Of a stretch of 64,000 nucleotides of DNA, positions 2,546 through 38,951 are shown one piece after another; within the stretch, counting starts at the first letter, position 1, and the number at the start of each line of letters is the position of its first letter. The stretch is from Hyaloraphidium curvatum SAG 235-1. Its lineage: Eukaryota; Fungi; Monoblepharomycota. The notes under the pieces were generated by a model. The model was not told the DNA's origin, ran no database searches, and was given only the letters and a program-made list of their open reading frames with translations. Both the position numbers and the translations under genes were made by a program. The stretch is taken from positions 434,001 to 498,000 of the forward strand of contig JAIVFI010000010.1 in the NCBI GenBank assembly GCA_025558095.1, read 5' to 3'.

Positions 2546-3794
2546 ATGCCGCCGAAGAAGGCCGCCGGGAAGAAGGTCGCGGCCGCGCCGTTCCCCGCAA
2601 AGGGCGGCAAGGCCGCGAAGGAGCCGGCGAACCCGCTGTTCGAGAAGACGCCCAAGAACTTCGGCATCGGTGGGCGCGGCCTACCCAGCGACCTCGAGAC
2701 GCGCTCACGCCGCGGTTGCAGGCCAGGACATCCAGCCCCAGCGCGACCTGTCCCGCTACGTCAAGTGGCCCGAATACGTCCGCCTGCAGCGCCAGAAGGC
2801 CATCCTGAAGAAGCGGCTGAAGGTGCCGCCGGCAGTCAACCAGTTCACGCGCGTGCTGGACAAGAACACCGGTGGGCACCGGCGGCGCGCATCGGCACCG
2901 GAGGAGAGGGCTCACGCGGGTCGCGTCTGCAGCGACGCAGCTGTTCAAGGTCCTGAACAAGTACCGCCCCGAGACCAAGCAGGAGAAGAAGGAGCGCCTG
3001 AAGGCGACCGCGGAAAAGGTCGCCGCCGGCGGCAAGGCCGAGGCGGACAAGAAGCCCCTGTTCGTCAAGTACGGCATCAACCACCTGACGGCGCTCGTGG
3101 AGAACAAGAAGGCCGCCCTGGTGGTCATTGCCGACGACGTCGACCCCATTGAGGTGAACAGTCGCTGCCAATGACCGGTCTCGCGCGAATGGCCCTCCGG
3201 GTGCCCTCTTTGCCGGACCACTGTTAGGCATGCCCCCGCGCCGGGTGCGGACGCGTTGCCGAAGCCGCAAGGCAGAGGCCGCGCAGATGCAGGCAGGGGT
3301 GCATTATTGCGACCAAGTAGCTGATGAACCTGGCCGTTCTCCTCCCCTTCCCCCCGCGCTGCGCCCCACCTCGACGCTTGCTTCCGGACCGGGTGCGTAC
3401 CTTTGCTGCGTCCGCCTGACCTCCCACAGCTCGTCATTTGGCTGCCCGCCCTCTGCCGGAAGATGGGCGTGCCGTACTGCATCGTCAAGGGCAAAGCCCG
3501 CCTCGGCACCGTCGTGCACAAGAAGACGGCCACCGCCCTCGCCTTGACCGAGGTGCGGCCCGAGGACAAAAAGGACCTTGCGGATCTCGTCGGCGCCATC
3601 AAGGCGAACTACAACGACAAGGACGCCGAGATCCGGAGGAGCTGGGGCGGCGGTGTCATGGGCCAGAAGAGTGGGTCGCGGCGTTGCGTTCGGGCGGACG
3701 ATGGTCTGACGCCGTGGTTCTGTCAGGCGTGCACAGGACGGAGGCGCGCGCAAAGGCGCTCGCGAAGGAGGCGGCCGTCAAGGCCAGCGCCTGA
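2546..3794 (+). CDS. RPL8: 60S ribosomal protein eL8 (L8/L7a), 5 exons
   Basis: [14 protein letters not shown]|[24 protein letters not shown]...DVDPIE|[26 protein letters not shown]. Introns at 2670-2721, 2872-2932, 3154-3429 and ~3671-3726. Confidence 0.98.
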
Positions 3795-4002
3795 GCCGGT
3801 TCTTTTGGGTCGTGCCGCTGCGCGGATGCTTCGCTTGGATGTATTGGGCGGCTCCGCGCGGAAACACGTCTCTTGCCTGGCTTTGTTTGCCCCTGCTTCC
3901 TTCGAATTGTGTCCCGCGGTGCCGGATATGAAGATGGCCGGCCACGCCGCCTCGATCACGCGCTCCGCTCCTTCTGGCCTTCAGCCTAGTCGACGCAGCG
4001 TC

Positions 4003-4515
4003 TCAGTGTCCAGCGGTGTCTTCTCCACGAGGCACTTCGAGCACTTTGTACGCCTTCTCCCCGCCGGCCGCGATCATGGCTTCCGCGATCTTGAGCTCGT
4101 CGCGGAGCGCGTCCAGCCTCTTGTTCCCGTTTGAGTAGCCGCTCCTCTCCGGGTGCCCGTCCAGCTTGCGGATCATCGCTTCGAGCACGGGCTTGACCTT
4201 CCTGGCGAGCTCGGGGTGGCTGAACACCCTGCGCGGGCTCGAGCCCCCGGCGAGCATGTTGAGGAGGCCCGACGGGACGCCGTGGCGCGCGACGAGCATG
4301 AACATGGCGGTGTTGCCGGGCATGAGCTCGGAGACCATGTCGGCGACGAGGTGGAAGTTCTTTTCCACCCAGTCCTGCTGCTCTTCGTACGACGCGTCGT
4401 CGTCCGACCCGGGCGGCTCGCGGCGCGGATCCTCGGAAAGGAGGCGGCTGACGAGCTCGTCCCAAGTGTCGAGCGCGTCATCGTTTTCGTCGCAATAGAA
4501 GCCCCAGGCGCCCAT
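4003..4515 (-). CDS. Hypothetical protein with a bacterial DUF4259-like N-terminus
   Basis: Intronless. Starts [16 protein letters not shown], resembling the MGAWG...NDxAxD start of DUF4259 proteins (recognised by eye). Confidence 0.6.
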
Positions 4516-4603
4516 TTTGATGGAATGGAGGCGGAAAGAACCGACACGTGTGCGCGCGATCAAGTGGTCACCTTCAAGGCGCTTGAACCGCTGTGACTAC
4601 AAT

Positions 4604-5416
4604 TCATGTAGTCGACAGATCTAATCCGCCGCGCGCCTCCACCTCGCGCTCCAGATCCAAGATTCTGGAGTAGTCTGCCTCCTCCACGTCCGAGAACCCT
4701 GCGATGAGGAGCTGCCTCCGAACATCCGCCAGCTCCGGATCATCTACCGCGGCATCCAGCGCCTGACGTATCTTTACCATATCTTTCGACCGCGCCAGTG
4801 ACGTGATGTACGGCAAAGAAGGGACCTGCGGAGAGCGAGCGACCTCGACGAGGTCCGCCAGGAGCTCGGGCCTATGTCGGACTGCCAGTGCGACGCACAC
4901 GGCGTCCACGGCTGCCACATCTGCACGTCCCTCGTTCAGTGCCGCGAGGGACAGAAGGTGTCCGCCCGTCATGACGGTCCGGGAAAAGAAGCGGCCCCGA
5001 TCGGCGAGCGGTCCAAAGACCAGCTTCAAGGCCAGCATTCCAGACATGGAATCAGTATTGTTCACTGCCGCCACGCGTCCGCGAAAGTCCTCAAGGCGCG
5101 TCGCTCCGTTCGACCTCCTGGCCAGGACGATGCTAGAGTAACGTCCCACTGAGCACCCGTCGGCATCGTAGGTCGGCGCTGCGACAAACGACACGCGATC
5201 CCGCAGGGCGTGGGTCAACGGGTATCCGCACGTCTGACTGAGGATGAGTTCCGGGTCGGTCCAGACGCTTTCAATGTCGCTGTAGTCGGGTCGCGTCGGC
5301 CCGGCGGGAGCCTCGATGTGCAATCGGCGCAAATGGCGCGCGATGCCGCGAATCCATAAGTCCGTCGCCTCATGGAGCTCGGGCCAATCATACATGGGCA
5401 GAGTGAGCGTGGCCAT
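4604..5416 (-). CDS. PhnD/SsuA/transferrin-family substrate-binding protein (bacterial type, no signal peptide)
   Basis: Intronless, 270 aa. Motifs LPMYDW, SQTCGYP, YSSIVLAR, AAVNNTDSMSG, TGGHLLSL, ADVAAVDAV, LPYIT. Confidence 0.88.
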   Translation of the reverse strand: MATLTLPMYDWPELHEATDLWIRGIARHLRRLHIEAPAGPTRPDYSDIESVWTDPELILSQTCGYPLTHALRDRVSFVAAPTYDADGCSVGRYSSIVLARRSNGATRLEDFRGRVAAVNNTDSMSGMLALKLVFGPLADRGRFFSRTVMTGGHLLSLAALNEGRADVAAVDAVCVALAVRHRPELLADLVEVARSPQVPSLPYITSLARSKDMVKIRQALDAAVDDPELADVRRQLLIAGFSDVEEADYSRILDLEREVEARGGLDLSTT

Positions 5417-5715
5417 ACGTCTAGCATGTCACGGCGGTGCCAGCGGCGGAGCAACCAGGAAAGACCCCGCCCCCGCCCCAAATGATGTGTCCCCGTCCCC
5501 GGGCCAGAAAACTCCTCCGGAGTTCCCGATGGAAACGGAGTGAGCGTCTGGGACGGCCGGCCCCGCCGCCGATTGGCGGGGGTCGCGAGATTCCGGATGA
5601 CGCGATGAGTTTGGTGCAAGCGCAAAGCACAACATGCGGGCGTCCCTGAAACTCAAAGACCCCCCGGTCAATCCCGAAAACGATGACCATTCGACGAGAG
5701 AAAACACCCGCCGCC

Positions 5716-6768
5716 ATGTCGTTACGTCTGGAATGGGCGACCCTGGGACTTATCGGCGCAACGTGGGGCGCTTTCGTCACGTTGACGCTTCTGCACGCCG
5801 CGATCCCCCTTTGGACCATGGTGCTCGCCGGCGCCTATATCGTGGCGCTTCACAACTCGCTGCAGCACGAGGCGACCCACGGGCACCCGACGAGCAGCAG
5901 TACGCTCAACGAGGCCCTGGTTTCCGTCCTGCCTATCAGCCTCTGGTTCCCCTTCCGCCGTTTCAAGAAGTTGCACCTGCAGCACCACCGCGACGAGAAT
6001 CTGACGGATCCGGCCCAGGATCCCGAGAGCTACTACTTTGACCCTCAGGCCTGGGCATCAACGCCCGGCTGGCTCCGCGCCGTCTACACGGCCAACAACA
6101 CTCTTGCCGGGCGCCTGATCCTCGGCCCTGCCCTGGTTGTTATCAGGTTTTGGCCCGCCGAGCTTCTCAAAATCCTGCAGGGCGACGGCGAGATCGCCCT
6201 CGCGTGGGCAGTGCACCTCGCCGGGATCGCCCTGCTCCGTCAGTTGCTCCGCTTCTGCGGCATGGACTTTGCCTACTTCATCCTCGCCGTCGCATACCCC
6301 GGCAACTCCCTGACGCTGCTTCGATCATTTGTCGAGCACCGCGCGCACCATCTCCCCGGCGGGCGGACAGCCATCGTCGAGGCCCACCCCGCCATCTCCC
6401 TCCTCTTCCTCCACAACAACCTGCACGCGGCGCACCACGAAAAACCCAGCATGCCATGGTACGAGATTCCGCGGTACTACCGCGAGAACAAGGAGCGGCT
6501 GCTGGCCGAGAACTCGGGATACTTCATTGATGGTTACTCTGCGATCGCGCTCCGCTGGCTTTTCGTGCCAAAGGAGCCCATCGAGCACCCGCTGCTGGCT
6601 GCAGCCGCCCGTGGAGGCGAGGAGAAAAAGCCGCTTGCGAGCGACGTGGGCAAGAAGGCGTTCTTGGGGACGCTGCGCGGCCCGGTGTACGAATCGAGGA
6701 GCCGGGAGACGATACCGACGACTTTGAGAAGGCTCGGAAGGCGGGCATTCCGCATCGATGTACGCTGA
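5716..6768 (+). CDS. Membrane di-iron fatty-acid-desaturase-family enzyme (bacterial type)
   Basis: Intronless. His boxes QHEATHGHP, HLQHH, HNNLHAAHH plus LTDPAQDPES and LLRSFVEH; hydrophobic segments. Confidence 0.9.
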   Translation: MSLRLEWATLGLIGATWGAFVTLTLLHAAIPLWTMVLAGAYIVALHNSLQHEATHGHPTSSSTLNEALVSVLPISLWFPFRRFKKLHLQHHRDENLTDPAQDPESYYFDPQAWASTPGWLRAVYTANNTLAGRLILGPALVVIRFWPAELLKILQGDGEIALAWAVHLAGIALLRQLLRFCGMDFAYFILAVAYPGNSLTLLRSFVEHRAHHLPGGRTAIVEAHPAISLLFLHNNLHAAHHEKPSMPWYEIPRYYRENKERLLAENSGYFIDGYSAIALRWLFVPKEPIEHPLLAAAARGGEEKKPLASDVGKKAFLGTLRGPVYESRSRETIPTTLRRLGRRAFRIDVR

Positions 6769-6795
6769 CTCTATACACGCTCAAACATGGCCTTG

Positions 6796-7437
6796 CTACT
6801 TGCCGCCGAGGATCTTGAACGGCCCGCCCTTTTCCAGCGCCCTCTTGTAGGCCGGCCTCGAATGGATCCTCTCCAGCCAATCCAGCAGCTTCGGGAACCG
6901 CTCATCCAGCCCCCCGCGGACCACCGCCGCCTCGAGCGGGAAGCTCATCACCACGTCCGCCGCCGAAAACTCGTTCCCCGCGAACCACGGCCTCGACGCG
7001 AGCTCGCCCTCCAGAAAGTGGAGCTGCGCCTCGATGTTGGGCCGCACGAACGCGTCGGACATTCCCGCACCCCCGGGCACGCGGTCCAGGAGCAGCTTCA
7101 TCACCAGCAGGGGTTGAGCCGAACCCTCTGCGAAGTGCAAGTAGTACGTGTAGCGGCGCCTGTCCTCGCCCGCGGGGGGTTTGAGCTTGCCCCCGGCGAG
7201 CTCATCCACAATGTACTCGATTATGGCACCCGTCTCGGCGACGACGACATCGCCGTGCTTGATCACTGGGCTTTTGCCGAGGGGATGGATCTCCTTGAGC
7301 TCGGGCGGGGCGAGGTTCGTCACGGGATCCCGCGAGAAGCGGAGGACCTCGTAGGGAATGTCCAGCTCCTCGAGGAGCCAGAGCACGCGCTGCGAGCGCG
7401 AATTCTCCAGATGATACACCTTGACAGGCTCCATCAT
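6796..7437 (-). CDS. Glutathione S-transferase, GTT1-like
   Basis: HLENSRSQRVLWLLEEL, HPLGKSPV, AETGAI, HFAEGS, FSAADVVMSFPL. Intronless. Confidence 0.93.
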   Translation of the reverse strand: MMEPVKVYHLENSRSQRVLWLLEELDIPYEVLRFSRDPVTNLAPPELKEIHPLGKSPVIKHGDVVVAETGAIIEYIVDELAGGKLKPPAGEDRRRYTYYLHFAEGSAQPLLVMKLLLDRVPGGAGMSDAFVRPNIEAQLHFLEGELASRPWFAGNEFSAADVVMSFPLEAAVVRGGLDERFPKLLDWLERIHSRPAYKRALEKGGPFKILGGK

Positions 7438-7553
7438 CCCGAGTGGAATGCTCCCCGGGAGACAATCGGCCGGCTGTGTTTATGGTTATTGCTCGCAAAC
7501 TCGACCTTCTCAGAAATCGGACCCCGGCCATGCTTGTTCGCCGACAGAGAGCG

Positions 7554-9204
7554 ATGGCGGAGTCCATCGAGCAGCCTGAAGCAGCTGGCTCCGTCTTTTC
7601 CGAGTCCGGCGTGCGCCGCTCCGCCCGCGCCGCCAAGCCCCGTCTGCCCCCGCCCGCGCCGGAGCCAGCCCCGGAAGCGGAGTCTGCCCCCCGGAAGCGG
7701 CGCGCCAAACCCGCGCCGAAGCGCCCCGCGGCCGAAATTGGGACGCACGATGAGAAGGAGCCCGTGGCTGTGGGGAACGAGGGCGCGGAGACCTCTGCCC
7801 GGGCCGATGGGGAGGGGGTGACTCAGCGTGCCCCGACCAAGAAGCGCCGCAAGGCCGCGGCGAAGGAAGACGAGCCCCCGGCCTACAGGCTGGTGCAGGA
7901 GACGGTCACGCTGGAAGGCCTGCCGGTCGAGATACTCGAACAGATCGTCGGGTACGTGCCACCTTCGCATCTTCCAACTCGTCCTTCGTGCGACCCCTCC
8001 TCCCCAGCCTCCTGGCGAAGCACGACGTCCGCGACGCCCTCAACCTCTCCGAATCCTCGGCCTACATGAACTCGGCGGTCAAGGACAGCCCCGTGTGGCA
8101 CTCCATCCTGCGCGCCGCCGGGCTGCCGGAGCCCAAGAAGCGTAGCCGGGTGTACGGCACGTGCTTCGCGGTGGTGGGGAAGAACTGGCACCGCATGTGC
8201 GAGGGGTGCTACGCCGTCAGGCGCGGTGGGTTTCCTGGCCCGTGCGTGCGTATTAGGTGCTGACCCCGCGCCGCGGAAGACCGCGCGCCGTACGACGTCG
8301 ACGGGACGACCTTCAGCCTCTGCACCACCTGCCGCGTGTCGCTCTGGGACCCCGCGGACGACGAGGAGCTCGACGCGGCGGCGATGAAGCGCATCACCAA
8401 GACCGAGGCGCTCAACACCTACCGGCTTTCCGAGGGCGACCTCGAAGGCTTGGACGTGCAGTTCAGGGTCAACCCGCACGGGTACTTTGCCGCGCCGATG
8501 CAGCTCTTCCTGGAGCACGAGGTGGTGGAGGTCGCGAGGAGGCTGCACGGGGGGGATCGGGGCATCGAGGTCGGCGGCGACGCCTGGCATGCACCACGAG
8601 GTCGGACTGACGCCCCGACAGGCGGTCCAGAGGTTGCACCGCGAGCGCTCGGGCAAGGTGCAGGAGAAGCGCGCGCAGGCCCGCAAGTCGCGGAAGGAGG
8701 AGCTCGAGGCCGAGCTGGCCAAGCACGGGCTCCAGGTACGCGGGGATTCGAGGCTGTGCGAGGACTACATCAAGGGCGGCAAGGGCAGGGGCCTTCGCGA
8801 GGTGGTGGACGCGATGGTCGAGATGGACTGGTACTTCAAGCACACGGTGGGTCGTTTGGTCGCCGGGAGGCCGCCGATCGGCCGGCTGACGTTCCCGTCC
8901 GAAGAACTACGAGACCTTGCGCTACGAGGAGACCGTGCCGGCGTTCGTCGACTACCGCGGGCGCATGCGCTACGGCCGCCGCACGGTCAACTCGGAGCTG
9001 GGCAAGCAGCGCGCGCTGGAAGAGTTTGTGCGGAAGCGGCGCGCGGCGGGTCGGTCGTTCTTGCGCCGCCTACGTTTCGAGATCCGCTGACGTGCGTTTG
9101 GGACAGGGATCGACCGGTCGCCGGCCGAGGATCCGCCGTCGCCCGCGAGGCCGCCCGAGACGCTGTGGCCGCGGATCGAGGCGATGATGGGCATCCGGGG
9201 CTAG
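7554..9204 (+). CDS. F-box-like protein with CxxC motifs and an XPA-C-terminal-like region, spliced
   Basis: LEGLPVEILEQIV (F-box-like), CEGC/CTTC, ITKTEALNTYRLSEGDL...NPH...MQLF...HGG, RGDSRLCEDYI. Several ~50-nt introns; stop TAG at 9202-9204. Confidence 0.7.
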
Positions 9205-31606: not shown

Positions 31607-33565
31607 TCAAGCAGCCACCTTGATCCCGTTGGCCTCGCCGTCGTCGAGCAGCTTCCGCGCCCTGTCCCTCCCGAGCCTCTTGGCCGCATCCCGCAGCTTC
31701 TGCTCCTCCATGCCCTCGCACTCGGCGACCAGCCGATCGAATTCGGCCTGGAAGAGCTCGCACACGCGCTGCGCGTCGCCTTCCGAGAACCATTCGCCGG
31801 GGGCGCGGGGGGAAAGGGTCTTGTCGATGTCAGTGTACAGCGTCAGGGCGACCGAGTCGCCGTACTGCGGTCATCGACGAGTCCATTAGCGTAGGTAGTA
31901 GCGAACCATCGACATGGTACTCACGGAGAGAATCGTCATGTTCTGACCCTGGGGTCCGTTCGGCGGACCAATCGGCCACATGTTCTCGATGACCGCAGGT
32001 CCAAACACTGCACGGGGTAGAGTCAGCAAAACAACGAGGCACGAAGCAGGCTTGTTTGTGCAACTCACTGAGCTTCTTCTGCGGCCCGGGCACGTTCGAG
32101 ATGACACCGTGGAGCTTCCCCATTGACGTCAAGGTGATGCTTCGGCTAATGAGCCACGGGAACATCAAACCACGTTGAGAATGAAGCCCAACATAAGGTT
32201 CAACCGATCGTTTGAGCAGGGACATGCGCTGGTTGACGTCCAGGGCGCGCTGCACCGGCGAAGCGATGTGCGTGGGAACGCTAAGAAGGTATCCGGAGCT
32301 CTGATTGTTGATCGCGAAGTCGCTATTAACAAAAAGATCAGTTTCGGTCAAATTGTGCAGACGTAGACACCAACCGATCGGCGCGGTAGCTCGTGGGCAC
32401 AAGGAACACAAAGTGCCCGTCCTTCAGCTGGCCCTTCTCACGCAAGGCTTCCTGGAGGGCGCCGACGAGGAGCGAGACCATGAGGTCGTTGACGGTAGCC
32501 GACCCCACGCTATCCTTGGCCCGCCGGAGGGCGGCGAGGGACACGGGGGCCGACCAGGCGATCTGCTTGTCCGGCAGGCCTTGAGCGCGCTTGGTCGGGC
32601 TGTTGGCCCACGGGCCACGCCTCCGCGTGGTGTTGACGAGGATGCCGACCCAGACAAGGTTCTGGATGTACAGCAAGATGCTGTAGAGGAGGACGACGAG
32701 CTGCTTGATCGACTCCGCGGCGCGGGTGAACCAGGTTTTGGTCTCCTCGGCGATGCTCTTGCGCCTTCCTTTGACGGCCGAAGCCTTGAACTGCAGCGCA
32801 GCGACCTGGTCCGTAGAAGCTCGGTTCACCGCACGTCCGACAGCCGGATCAAAGTTTGCGGTCCACTTTAACAAAGCCTTGGTCGATCCCTGACCGTCCG
32901 TGATGGCATGGTGGAAGCGCCAGACCACGTAGCTCTTCCCGTCCACGTCCAGCAGCATCATCTGCCACAAGGGATGCTGCCAATCGTAGCCACTCGATAC
33001 GAAGGAGCACACAGCCTCCTGGAGGTCCTTGTCCGTGGAGCCAGGCGGCAATCGCTTGAAAACGTAGTGGTTGTTCACGTCGAAGCTCTCGTCCAGCTCC
33101 CAGTAGGGGCGGCCCAGAAGCCATTCGTTGCGAACCAGCCGCTTGATGTACCGGTCCCCAGTGAAGCGAGCAAAGTCGTCGGCGAGGACGCGGCCTTGTT
33201 CCTCTGTAATAGGCGACTGGAGCAAGTAGAGGCCGCCGCAGGTCATCGTCTCGTTGGGGATCTCCCTAGGGGCCAGTTCATCCGTTAGGCATTGAATGGA
33301 AGAGAGAGGTTCATCCGAAAGGCAGATCGGATAGCGATGGAATGATACGGGAAGGAGAGAGCAGACCGCGTGGAAAGATGAGCTTTCTGGTCGCCGGCGT
33401 TACAACCGAGCGACGCGACCAACCCAATGAGAAAGCCGTTGTCATTGCCTCGCAAGTAGTCGCGCTGAGGCGGGAGTCCGTAAGGAAACCTGTAGGCAGA
33501 GCGGGGTTCGTTCCGCTTAGAACCCTGACGCTGTCTCCCGCTCACAAACGAGCTGGCCGTACCAT
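31607..33565 (-). CDS. Wax ester synthase/diacylglycerol acyltransferase (WS/DGAT) family, spliced
   Basis: PLWQM, catalytic HHAITDG, ATVNDLMVS, ISNVPGP. N-terminal exon boundaries approximate. Confidence 0.85.
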
Positions 33566-36568: not shown

Positions 36569-38951
36569 TCATCTGCCCCTGAGCTGCAGGATCTCGGGTC
36601 CGTCCGTCGCCAACGGAAGAGAAACGTCCGCCAGCAGCCTCTTGAGGAGGTCCGCGAGCAGCGGCTCTCCTTTCCACGCCCTCGCCATCTCGTCCAGGAA
36701 CCTGCGGTGCAGCTCCACCTTGGCTTGTGCTTCCTCGGCCAGCTTGGCGATTCCTGAGTCCGTAGCCTTGGGTTTGAGATTGCGAACAATGAGCAACTCA
36801 ATCAAGGCCGCCTGGAACGCGAGGAACATGGTCGACGGAGGGAGGCTTGCCAGTTTTCGGTCGGGCTGCGCGAGAAGGCTGGCAACGATGCCCGCGACAG
36901 TTTCTGCGCTCTCGGCACACCTCACAAACGATTCGCTGACCAACCAGACCGAGTCCCGGGCCATCTCTTCAAGCCGGCGGGGCCGGTGGAGCACAATGCG
37001 AATCCCGTGGTAGAAAAGATGCATGTATGCCGTGTGGTAGGAGTGCACTTCGTCGCTTTCCACGGGGAGACCGTCGGGATCGTTCGGAAGCACGAGGAGG
37101 CGCGAACGAAACACGGCATTCGGCGCAATGGTGCGGCAAAAGTCCGGCAGCGCGGCCAACCAATCCATGAGCGCGGCGTCCAGCGTTCTCAGGCGCGTGA
37201 CAATCTCTTGCGGCGCTTCGGGAGAAAAGGGGTTGATGCCGGATTCCGCACATTGCGAGTGGAAGCCATGAACTTTCCCGTAAAGGTTGGTGAGCAGGAT
37301 GTAGTAAGTGAATGGGTCCATTCGCTCCCTGCCCCTTCGGATGGGGTTCAGCTTTACGATGTCCTCCTCGGGCGCATCGATCCAGCTGAGCACCTGCTCG
37401 GCAAACTCCTGGAAAGAGGCAAGCGGGCTTGAGCTCCTAAAGTGCAAGTAGAGCCCGCCCACAACCCACCTGCATGTCGCTCTCTGGAAAGAGAACGAAT
37501 GCGCCTTCGGGGCCGGCCACGCCATTCAGTGTACGCGATCCGAGCGCCTTGATCGCTTGGTACGCTGCCATTCGGAGCTTCACCAGCCCTGCTTCCTCTC
37601 CCAGGAGCCCTTGCCAGACGATCTCGCCAACCGGCAAGCGAAGCTGACACTCCGAATCCTTCACAGCGAGAGGCCGGTTTCCGGCCACCGTTTGCAGGCG
37701 GTCGGTTCCGTAAATCACCCAAAAGACGCGGCGCCGGGTTTCCGCGGCAACAAAGCCGAGATCCGACGGCGGCTCACGGTTCAGACCGAGCTCGAAACAC
37801 ATCCGAGTGCCAAGGGCAGCGTAAATGTACGACAACGATCCTAGGCCTCCAGAAGACATCGAGTAGAGGGTCAGAACGTGGAGCGCCTGTGCGAGCTCGA
37901 CACTGGAACCGATTTCAAGTTCCCGACCGAGCTCCTCCTTCGCCCTTTCGAAAAACTCCTCCGGCTTGGCGAGCGGGTGCGTCGAGCTCTTGGCAGCCAG
38001 AGCCATCATGGCCAGCAGCAAGACCGGCGGATTCCGATCCACCGAGGCAAGGAAAGTCGTGGGCTGGAAGATCGGAGCGAGACTGTAGCACGAGGTGAAA
38101 AAGGTGGCCATCAAGGACTGAATGAGCTCGGCCGGGTAAGCGGCGAAGACGGGGTTTTGTGACGATCTCGGAAGCGAGAAGGTGACGGCGAAGCCAGGCA
38201 ACACGGTCACAGGGGATAGCTGCCCAGATTCGGCGGTTCCCGAGCTCCCATCTTCCGACGTTCCGGTTGCCGACAAAGTCATTTCCAGGTAATCGTCGTA
38301 GGATTCCGGCGAGGCGCCCGGGAAGAGCCCCGACAAAGCGTCGTCGACCGAAAAAGTCGGAATCGCTTGAGGCGGAGCAGCAAACTGCAGCGGCTGCGCC
38401 CCGGTGAGCGACCGGGAAATCTGCTCGGCAAGAAGTGTGAAGTTGGCACCGGGCGCATCGAAAGTTCCGAGCAGATCCGGCACGAAAGGGTACGAAGGGG
38501 GTGGAGACGCCGTCGAACGCGTCGGGAACGCGTTTGGAGCGGGTCCTGCGATCTGCAAGCCGATTGGAGCCACACCGAGTGTTGCAGAAGCAATTCCTTG
38601 TCGTGGTTGACGAGATGTGATGGCGAACGGGGCCAACGCGGCTTCCGCGGCGGCAACAGCGGCCGGGGCCTCAGCAAGACCCGCACCAAGGCCGCCGGCG
38701 AGCATCGCGCGGTTTGCCTCCATGTTTGCTCGCAAGAGTTCCTCCAGCTGCCGCAGCCTTTTGTGGACTGCGCTCTCCGTCCCCTTCGGCACACCCCGCT
38801 TCTTCGCGACTCGATCGTATTTGCACTCATTTGGCGACCGACGTCCGATGCACGCGGAACACGGCTGGTTCCCGTCGCACTTTGTCCTTTTCGCGTGGCA
38901 GACGTTGCAGGCCTTGGACGTCGGGCGCGCCCGCGATTCCGAATCGGCCAT
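36569..38951 (-). CDS. Zn2Cys6 transcription factor with fungal middle homology region
   Basis: ACNVCHAKRTKCDGNQPCSACIGRRSPNECKY; ELGLNRE...ETRRRVFWVIYGTDR. One intron at ~37420-37469. Confidence 0.95.

Follow-up and report, generated by a model that had tools for sequence, protein, structure and literature searches.

Why does a fungus keep, head to head, one bacterial-type gene for a soluble binding protein and one for a membrane di-iron enzyme, and do the two proteins work together? This question is raised by a locus of Hyaloraphidium curvatum SAG 235-1 on contig JAIVFI010000010.1, of which positions 434,001 to 498,000 of the forward strand were analysed. This whole stretch of 64,000 nt, with a guanine plus cytosine (GC) content of about 65%, is referred to as the window, and coordinates are window positions. 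The two genes and the spacer between them are as follows.

4604–5416, minus strand: intronless gene for a cytoplasmic AioX/ArrX-like binding protein of 270 amino acids, family PF12974 (Phosphonate-bd)
5417–5682, between the genes: divergent spacer of 266 bp separating the facing start codons
5683–6768, plus strand: intronless gene for a membrane di-iron desaturase/hydroxylase-family enzyme of 361 amino acids, family PF00487 (FA_desaturase)

The best explanation as a whole, to which we assign a probability of about 0.6, is that these are co-acquired effector genes of a conserved alphaproteobacterial module and that their proteins work together. Both open reading frames (ORFs) are uninterrupted and lie where a preliminary description of this DNA had placed them. 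Its reading of two intronless, bacterial-type genes standing head to head was borne out. The proteins match their Pfam families (PF12974, E = 2.5e-19 and 70.1 bits against a cut-off of 27; PF00487, E = 4e-26 and 92.7 bits against a cut-off of 29.7), and both have full length relative to their bacterial homologues. The spacing of 299 bp given there applies if the desaturase starts at Met12 (position 5716); from the first ATG it is 266 bp, and it is Met1 that gives the N-terminal length of the bacterial homologues.

Bacterial neighbourhoods were compared by tblastn with the called genes as seeds in two samples, namely the 80 best genome loci (L006 to L085) and 201 Alphaproteobacteria drawn evenly from the class. 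The results showed that the binding-protein gene has a desaturase homologue immediately upstream, in divergent orientation, at 58 of the 80 loci, which is the geometry of the window; at 14 of these 58 a gene for an XRE-family regulator lies between the two, on the strand of the binding-protein gene. Of the 201 Alphaproteobacteria, 26 have the binding protein and 27 the desaturase; 22 have both, compared to 3.5 expected if the two were independent. In 16 of these 22 the two genes are no more than 1.6 kb apart, and in the other six they are unlinked. That the two subfamilies are neighbours in bacteria, as the preliminary description had stated, is supported by these counts.

Three gene orders were seen among the 16 linked pairs. 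The commonest is a desaturase gene divergent from an operon in which the XRE gene is followed by the binding-protein gene; in others the pair is directly divergent, or a same-strand operon runs from the desaturase gene to the binding-protein gene (four genomes, in two of which an XRE gene faces the operon). An XRE gene stands beside the pair in 12 of the 16, in most of them directly before the binding-protein gene, and it always divergently faces one module operon. An adjacency that survives rearrangement, co-transcription included, is good evidence for functional coupling.

The bacterial unit is larger than the two genes of which the module had been said to consist: the XRE regulator is a usual member, and a glutathione S-transferase (GST) belongs to it in the closest relatives. 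In the closest relatives of the window desaturase (L108, P0125 contig), the genes for the XRE regulator, the binding protein and the GST form an operon divergent from the desaturase gene, and in L108 its genes overlap by 4 bp. The module is occasionally joined by GFA-family proteins, a DAO-family oxidoreductase or an amidase. The regulator has about 290 residues, with an N-terminal HTH_3/XRE domain and about 200 C-terminal residues for which no Pfam or NCBIfam family match was found. Two side observations concern these further members. The regulator is better conserved than the binding protein, with identities of 57–71% among Hyphomicrobiales loci and 45–56% in the wider class (examples are L088:4974-5858, L089:5016-5870 and L090:4833-5732). 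A gene of the GFA family (glutathione-dependent formaldehyde-activating-like) lies beside the binding-protein gene at L090:4399-4836 and at L100, L101 and L104, and with the co-operonic GST at other loci this makes glutathione a recurring theme around the module.

The preliminary description had called the binding protein PhnD-like. The result showed that this name is valid at the Pfam level only and that the closest solved relatives are the AioX/ArrX sensors. Neither the PhnD equivalog TIGR03431 (55.4 against 261 bits) nor the subfamily TIGR01098 (48.7 against 112 bits) was reached, and when the family profile was compared with solved structures, ArrX/AioX matched at E = 1e-18, PhnD at 7e-7 and PtxB at 3e-6. 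The AlphaFold2 model of the protein has a predicted local distance difference test score (pLDDT) of 97; a Foldseek search with it returned AioX/ArrX first (template modelling (TM) score 0.77–0.82), followed by XAC2383, PtxB, PhnD, HtxB and a bacterial sterol transporter. The last of these (7t1m) is a PhnD-fold protein that binds a lipid and provides a precedent for lipid binding by this fold.

The pocket of AioX is formed by Tyr88, Cys106, Tyr131, Ser161, Ser163, His192 and Asp210, of which Cys106 and Asp210 are lacking in PhnD (PMC5908839). In a HMMER alignment these positions correspond to Y45, C63, Y93, S123, S125, H153 and D171 of the window protein, so that all seven residues are kept; the protein is thus of class II, with an oxyanion pocket of the AioX/ArrX type. 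Among 64 family members, down to 34% identity, C63, S123, H153 and D171 are invariant, and Y93 and S125 are conserved in at least 90%. Compared with 196 bacterial binding proteins, the window protein keeps all 18 strictly invariant columns and 59 of the 63 columns conserved in at least 95%. As judged from these residues, a small oxyanion or anionic group is most likely still bound by the protein, in the cytosol.

The likeness to AioX/ArrX/ArxX (PDB 6esk, 6eu7 and 6x6b; PMC5908839) covers the best sequence match, the best fold match and the whole pocket, but identity is 21–24%, a signal peptide is absent from the window protein and throughout its bacterial family, and the gene is not beside a sensor histidine kinase or response regulator. 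Its bacterial neighbours are instead the XRE regulator, the GST and the desaturase; no arsenic, pho or ssu genes were found among the called neighbours in the bacterial neighbourhoods examined. The only module-like neighbours of the fungal gene are the desaturase gene and a non-orthologous GST gene. With PhnD, PtxB and HtxB, which serve ABC transporters of phosphonate and phosphite, the protein shares the PF12974 family, the fold and the anion-binding elements Ser-x-Ser-Gly, His and Tyr. It differs from them in being cytoplasmic, in its genome having no permease and in its low equivalog score, and from PhnD also in the pocket, where Cys and Asp stand in place of Gly65 and Asn175 (PMC5908839).

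As had been claimed, no signal peptide was found: the protein starts at the first β-strand (Leu-Pro-Met-Tyr-Asp-Trp, residues 6–11). The bacterial homologues, mostly of 254 residues, likewise begin at the first strand and without a signal peptide, so that in the donor the protein was cytoplasmic already. The missing signal peptide and transporter are thus no eukaryotic change, and the argument that retention without a transporter implies partnership with the di-iron enzyme is not supported. The absence of an ATP-binding cassette (ABC) permease, noted earlier for the window, extends to the whole genome, in which no PF00528 importer permease was found by a search that was positive in 14 of 14 control genomes. 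The binding protein therefore cannot serve an ABC importer here. Exactly one PF12974 gene is present in the genome.

For the desaturase, the histidine boxes (H62/H66/H68, H98/H101/H102 and H248/H251/H252) and the E218/H219 pair are conserved; among 74 sequences H62, H66, H98, H101, H102, H219, H248, H251 and H252 are invariant and H68 is nearly so. Compared with 173 desaturases, all 29 invariant columns and 58 of the 60 columns conserved in at least 95% are kept. In the AlphaFold2 model the helical membrane core has a pLDDT above 90, and residues 318–361 fall below 50. These residues (window 6637–6768) form a predicted-disordered C-terminal tail of about 45 residues that is lacking in all 73 aligned bacterial homologues, and the tail may have arisen by read-through past the ancestral stop codon. 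With the known PF00487 enzymes (acyl-lipid desaturases, AlkB, CrtR/CrtW and GntB) the protein shares the three histidine boxes and the four-helix membrane core. Unlike the characterised members, it matches no equivalog: CrtR, CrtW, GntB and AlkB were all far below their cut-offs (CrtR, 44 against 475 bits). The family profile matched no solved structure by sequence, and the best fold matches were a chain of the Chlamydomonas Ycf2-FtsHi complex (TM 0.54), AlkB (0.38) and SCD1 (0.31–0.33).

Homologues were searched for among 5.8 billion clustered proteins. All named and context-checked matches among the best 120 listed for each protein were bacterial, and none was more than 59% identical. The best matches of the binding protein are 49–59% identical (55–59% at the top) and belong to Hyphomicrobiales, Aestuariivirga or 'Alphaproteobacteria bacterium' wherever named; those of the desaturase are 43–56% identical over about 80–90% of its length. 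Taken together, the best relatives of the two proteins are of Hyphomicrobiales type, at 45–59% identity. No closer match was returned for either protein, and both are nested among bacterial sequences without a closer eukaryotic homologue in this database, only part of which carries names and from which records of very near genomes may be absent.

Trees were built with a quick setting, support being given by the Shimodaira–Hasegawa-like approximate likelihood ratio test (SH-aLRT). In the desaturase tree of 102 sequences, the window protein falls inside a 34-row clade (SH-aLRT 99) that includes loci L036, L038 and L074, and in a reduced set of 53 genomes having both genes it forms a clade with these three (SH-aLRT 99.6). 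Because the window rows are long branches, the approximately unbiased (AU) test was used for this key placement: a constraint that places the window desaturase within the core Aestuariivirga clade lowers the log-likelihood by 63 units (p-AU = 3e-7). The tree of the binding protein groups the window with these three bacterial genomes as well. Support for the placement is strong in the case of the desaturase and weak in that of the binding protein; to that extent the trees agree with the co-transfer assumed in the preliminary description. Since both genes place with the same genomes, the simplest reading of the trees is co-transfer as one piece of DNA from a donor resembling Hyphomicrobiales/Aestuariivirgaceae. 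The window branches measure 0.7–1.0 in both trees, compared to a median of 0.2, implying that the donor is unsampled, that the genes have long resided in the fungus or that they evolved faster once transferred.

The fungus has kept both genes in the head-to-head arrangement of the donor and, judging by the conserved columns, under purifying constraint, and both proteins look functional. In all three bacterial genomes nearest the window an XRE gene lies between the pair, implying that either the regulator was lost after transfer or the donor already had the two genes directly divergent. A tblastn search of the spacer revealed no remnant of the regulator, and no copy was found elsewhere in the fungal genome. 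Matches to sigma-70 promoters and terminators in 3700–7700 are no more frequent than in shuffled sequence. The preliminary description had also pointed to a CYS-3-like decamer at 5597–5606 and to sulfur or phosphorus scavenging; neither found support, the decamer being at chance level (11.6 one-mismatch matches would be expected in the window, and 10 were found).

Bacterium-to-fungus gene transfer is a familiar phenomenon, and in that respect the present case is ordinary. Earlier cases include desaturases acquired by Podila (PMC11291939). The present pair resembles them in being intronless, of bacterial type, nested in bacterial sequences and flanked by intron-bearing fungal genes. It differs in that two adjacent genes of one module are kept in their original divergent arrangement without the regulator, and in that the pair lies within a small block of other bacterial-looking genes of different affinity. 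Less ordinary, too, is that about a ninth of the sampled Alphaproteobacteria have the module, that no paper on the gene pair was found in a literature search, and that its binding-protein member is a cytoplasmic cousin of arsenic-oxyanion sensors. In the fungus the module is found naturally reduced to two genes, with no regulator, which points to these two proteins as the working unit.

Three things make a working pair the likeliest single reading: the linkage is conserved, some gene orders are co-transcribed, and it is precisely these two genes that survive where the regulator is absent. In the cytosol the soluble protein would bind either a small anionic ligand or a lipid-like substrate by its anionic head group, and would present what it has bound to the membrane enzyme, take up the product of that enzyme or gate the enzyme. 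The reaction of the membrane di-iron enzyme would be a hydroxylation or desaturation that depends on O2. Control of the bacterial module would fall to the XRE protein, and the GST would often handle a downstream step. The earlier idea of the binding protein as a cytosolic partner of the di-iron enzyme remains plausible in view of the same-strand operon of desaturase and binding protein that occurs in four genomes. A more specific version, which we put forward tentatively, is a two-protein oxygenase system in which a soluble protein with a periplasmic-binding-protein fold may act as the substrate carrier or specificity subunit of the membrane di-iron enzyme and the regulator is not needed; a system that works without its bacterial regulator could move whole into a fungus. 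If the pairing is functional, it would represent a new intracellular use of binding-protein folds and a new type of partner for membrane di-iron enzymes.

Several findings weigh against a working pair acquired together. No neighbouring desaturase gene is present at 22 of the 80 best loci, a distance of 130 kb separates the two genes on a single contig of Aestuariivirga litoralis, and nine of the 201 sampled genomes have only one of the two, indicating that the pairing is not obligatory. The placement of the binding protein is poorly resolved: its best maximum-likelihood tree (small set) recovers the clade of the window with L036, L038 and L074 at a support of 14, and in a larger tree the window joins a clade sharing its insertions (L019, L036, L038 and L074) with a weak SH-aLRT of 80. 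As the closest relatives have an intervening XRE gene, the fungal order requires a deletion or an unsampled donor. Each of the two proteins is on record from a single contig only. Moreover, the nearest characterised relatives of the binding protein, AioX and ArrX, are sensors, and its gene is usually co-operonic with that of a DNA-binding protein, so that a regulatory role fits as well as a catalytic one.

The last point leads to the main rival, which we consider unlikely: that the binding protein is a cytoplasmic ligand sensor acting through the XRE regulator, in the way that AioX signals to AioS/AioR, and that the desaturase is the regulated target. In the fungus the protein would then be an orphaned sensor that has taken on a new role or arrived too recently to have decayed. 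That the nearest solved relatives are signalling periplasmic binding proteins (PMC5908839) is what such a sensor would lead one to expect, and the frequent position of the XRE gene directly before the binding-protein gene, divergently facing one operon, points the same way. However, the pair is directly adjacent without an XRE gene at 44 of the 80 closest loci, an XRE gene was seen at only 17 of the 80, and L093 and L103 have the operon of desaturase and binding protein without one. The fungus, which lacks the regulator, nevertheless keeps the whole pocket and nearly all of the highly conserved positions.

Less probable still is that the two genes are unrelated in function, travelled together because they were adjacent in the donor, and were each kept, or have not yet been lost, separately. 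The genomes that have only one of the genes, and the six in which both are present but unlinked, would fit such independence; yet a co-occurrence in 22 genomes against 3.5 expected and an adjacency that persists through three gene orders, co-transcription among them, form a pattern typical of functional coupling.

The pair has to be seen within its chromosomal setting, the further features of which are as follows.

3403–3794, plus strand: 3′ exons of the host gene for eL8 (RPL8), flanking the block on its left (E = 3e-36 in the match to eukaryotic eL8 chains)
4003–4515, minus strand: ORF of 170 amino acids with a faint DUF4259-like N-terminus (Pfam E = 0.17), 88 bp after the stop codon of the binding-protein gene
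6796–7437, minus strand: bacterial-type GST gene, convergent with the desaturase gene, its product 60–64% identical to GSTs of Burkholderiales (Rubrivivax)

The genome comprises 31.9 Mb in 55 contigs, in which the binding-protein and desaturase genes are each present in a single copy, at about 438–441 kb and hence in the middle of a contig of 818,743 bp. Positions 3403–3699 encode the C-terminal part of ribosomal protein eL8 and hold only the last part of the L7Ae domain, indicating that earlier eL8 exons lie upstream. The eL8 exon is 0.8 kb to the left of the pair and 0.2 kb from the four-gene block (4003–7437), and a gene for a Zn2Cys6 and Fungal_trans transcription factor lies at 37437–38951; both share the contig with the pair, which is thereby physically linked to genuine host genes. 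The right flank begins with a low-complexity ORF that has a faint F-box-like match below the cut-off (E = 0.21). Although the spacings within the block (88, 266 and 28 bp) are bacterial-like, an assembly chimera or bacterial contamination, with the block not in a fungal chromosome at all, is very improbable, as the block stands in the middle of its contig, no more than 0.2 kb from a fungal gene on either side, has the GC content and codon use of the host, mixes alpha- and betaproteobacterial affinities and lacks the donor regulator in a way that no single bacterial fragment would show, and has no known bacterium closer than 59%, and as the absence of PF00528 from the whole assembly makes bulk bacterial contamination unlikely.

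At least two donor lineages are represented in the block, and this mosaic argues against one contaminant fragment. Its GST gene is intronless, and the product is 31–32% identical to the nearest paralogue in the same genome. Being only 27–28% identical to the GST of the bacterial module, it was rejected as an orthologue of that protein, and by its sequence affinities it looks like a bacterial acquisition separate from that of the pair. The stop codons of the GST and desaturase genes are 28 bp apart, implying that the two transcripts must end very tightly or overlap. The 170-residue ORF at the other end of the block is single-copy in the genome; it was rejected as a part of the module, with no match in 301 Pseudomonadota or 96 bacterial module loci. 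Only short, chance-like matches were found in a search for insertion-marking repeats flanking the block. Codon use, including GC at third codon positions, was rejected as a means of discriminating host from donor genes, because host and donor-like genes are both GC-rich (relative synonymous codon usage, r = 0.89).

Elsewhere in the window, an ORF of 302 amino acids at 32338–33246 on the minus strand matches the catalytic domain of wax ester synthase/diacylglycerol acyltransferase (PF03007, E = 4e-15). Members of this family are mostly bacterial, and the ORF could be another candidate for transfer.

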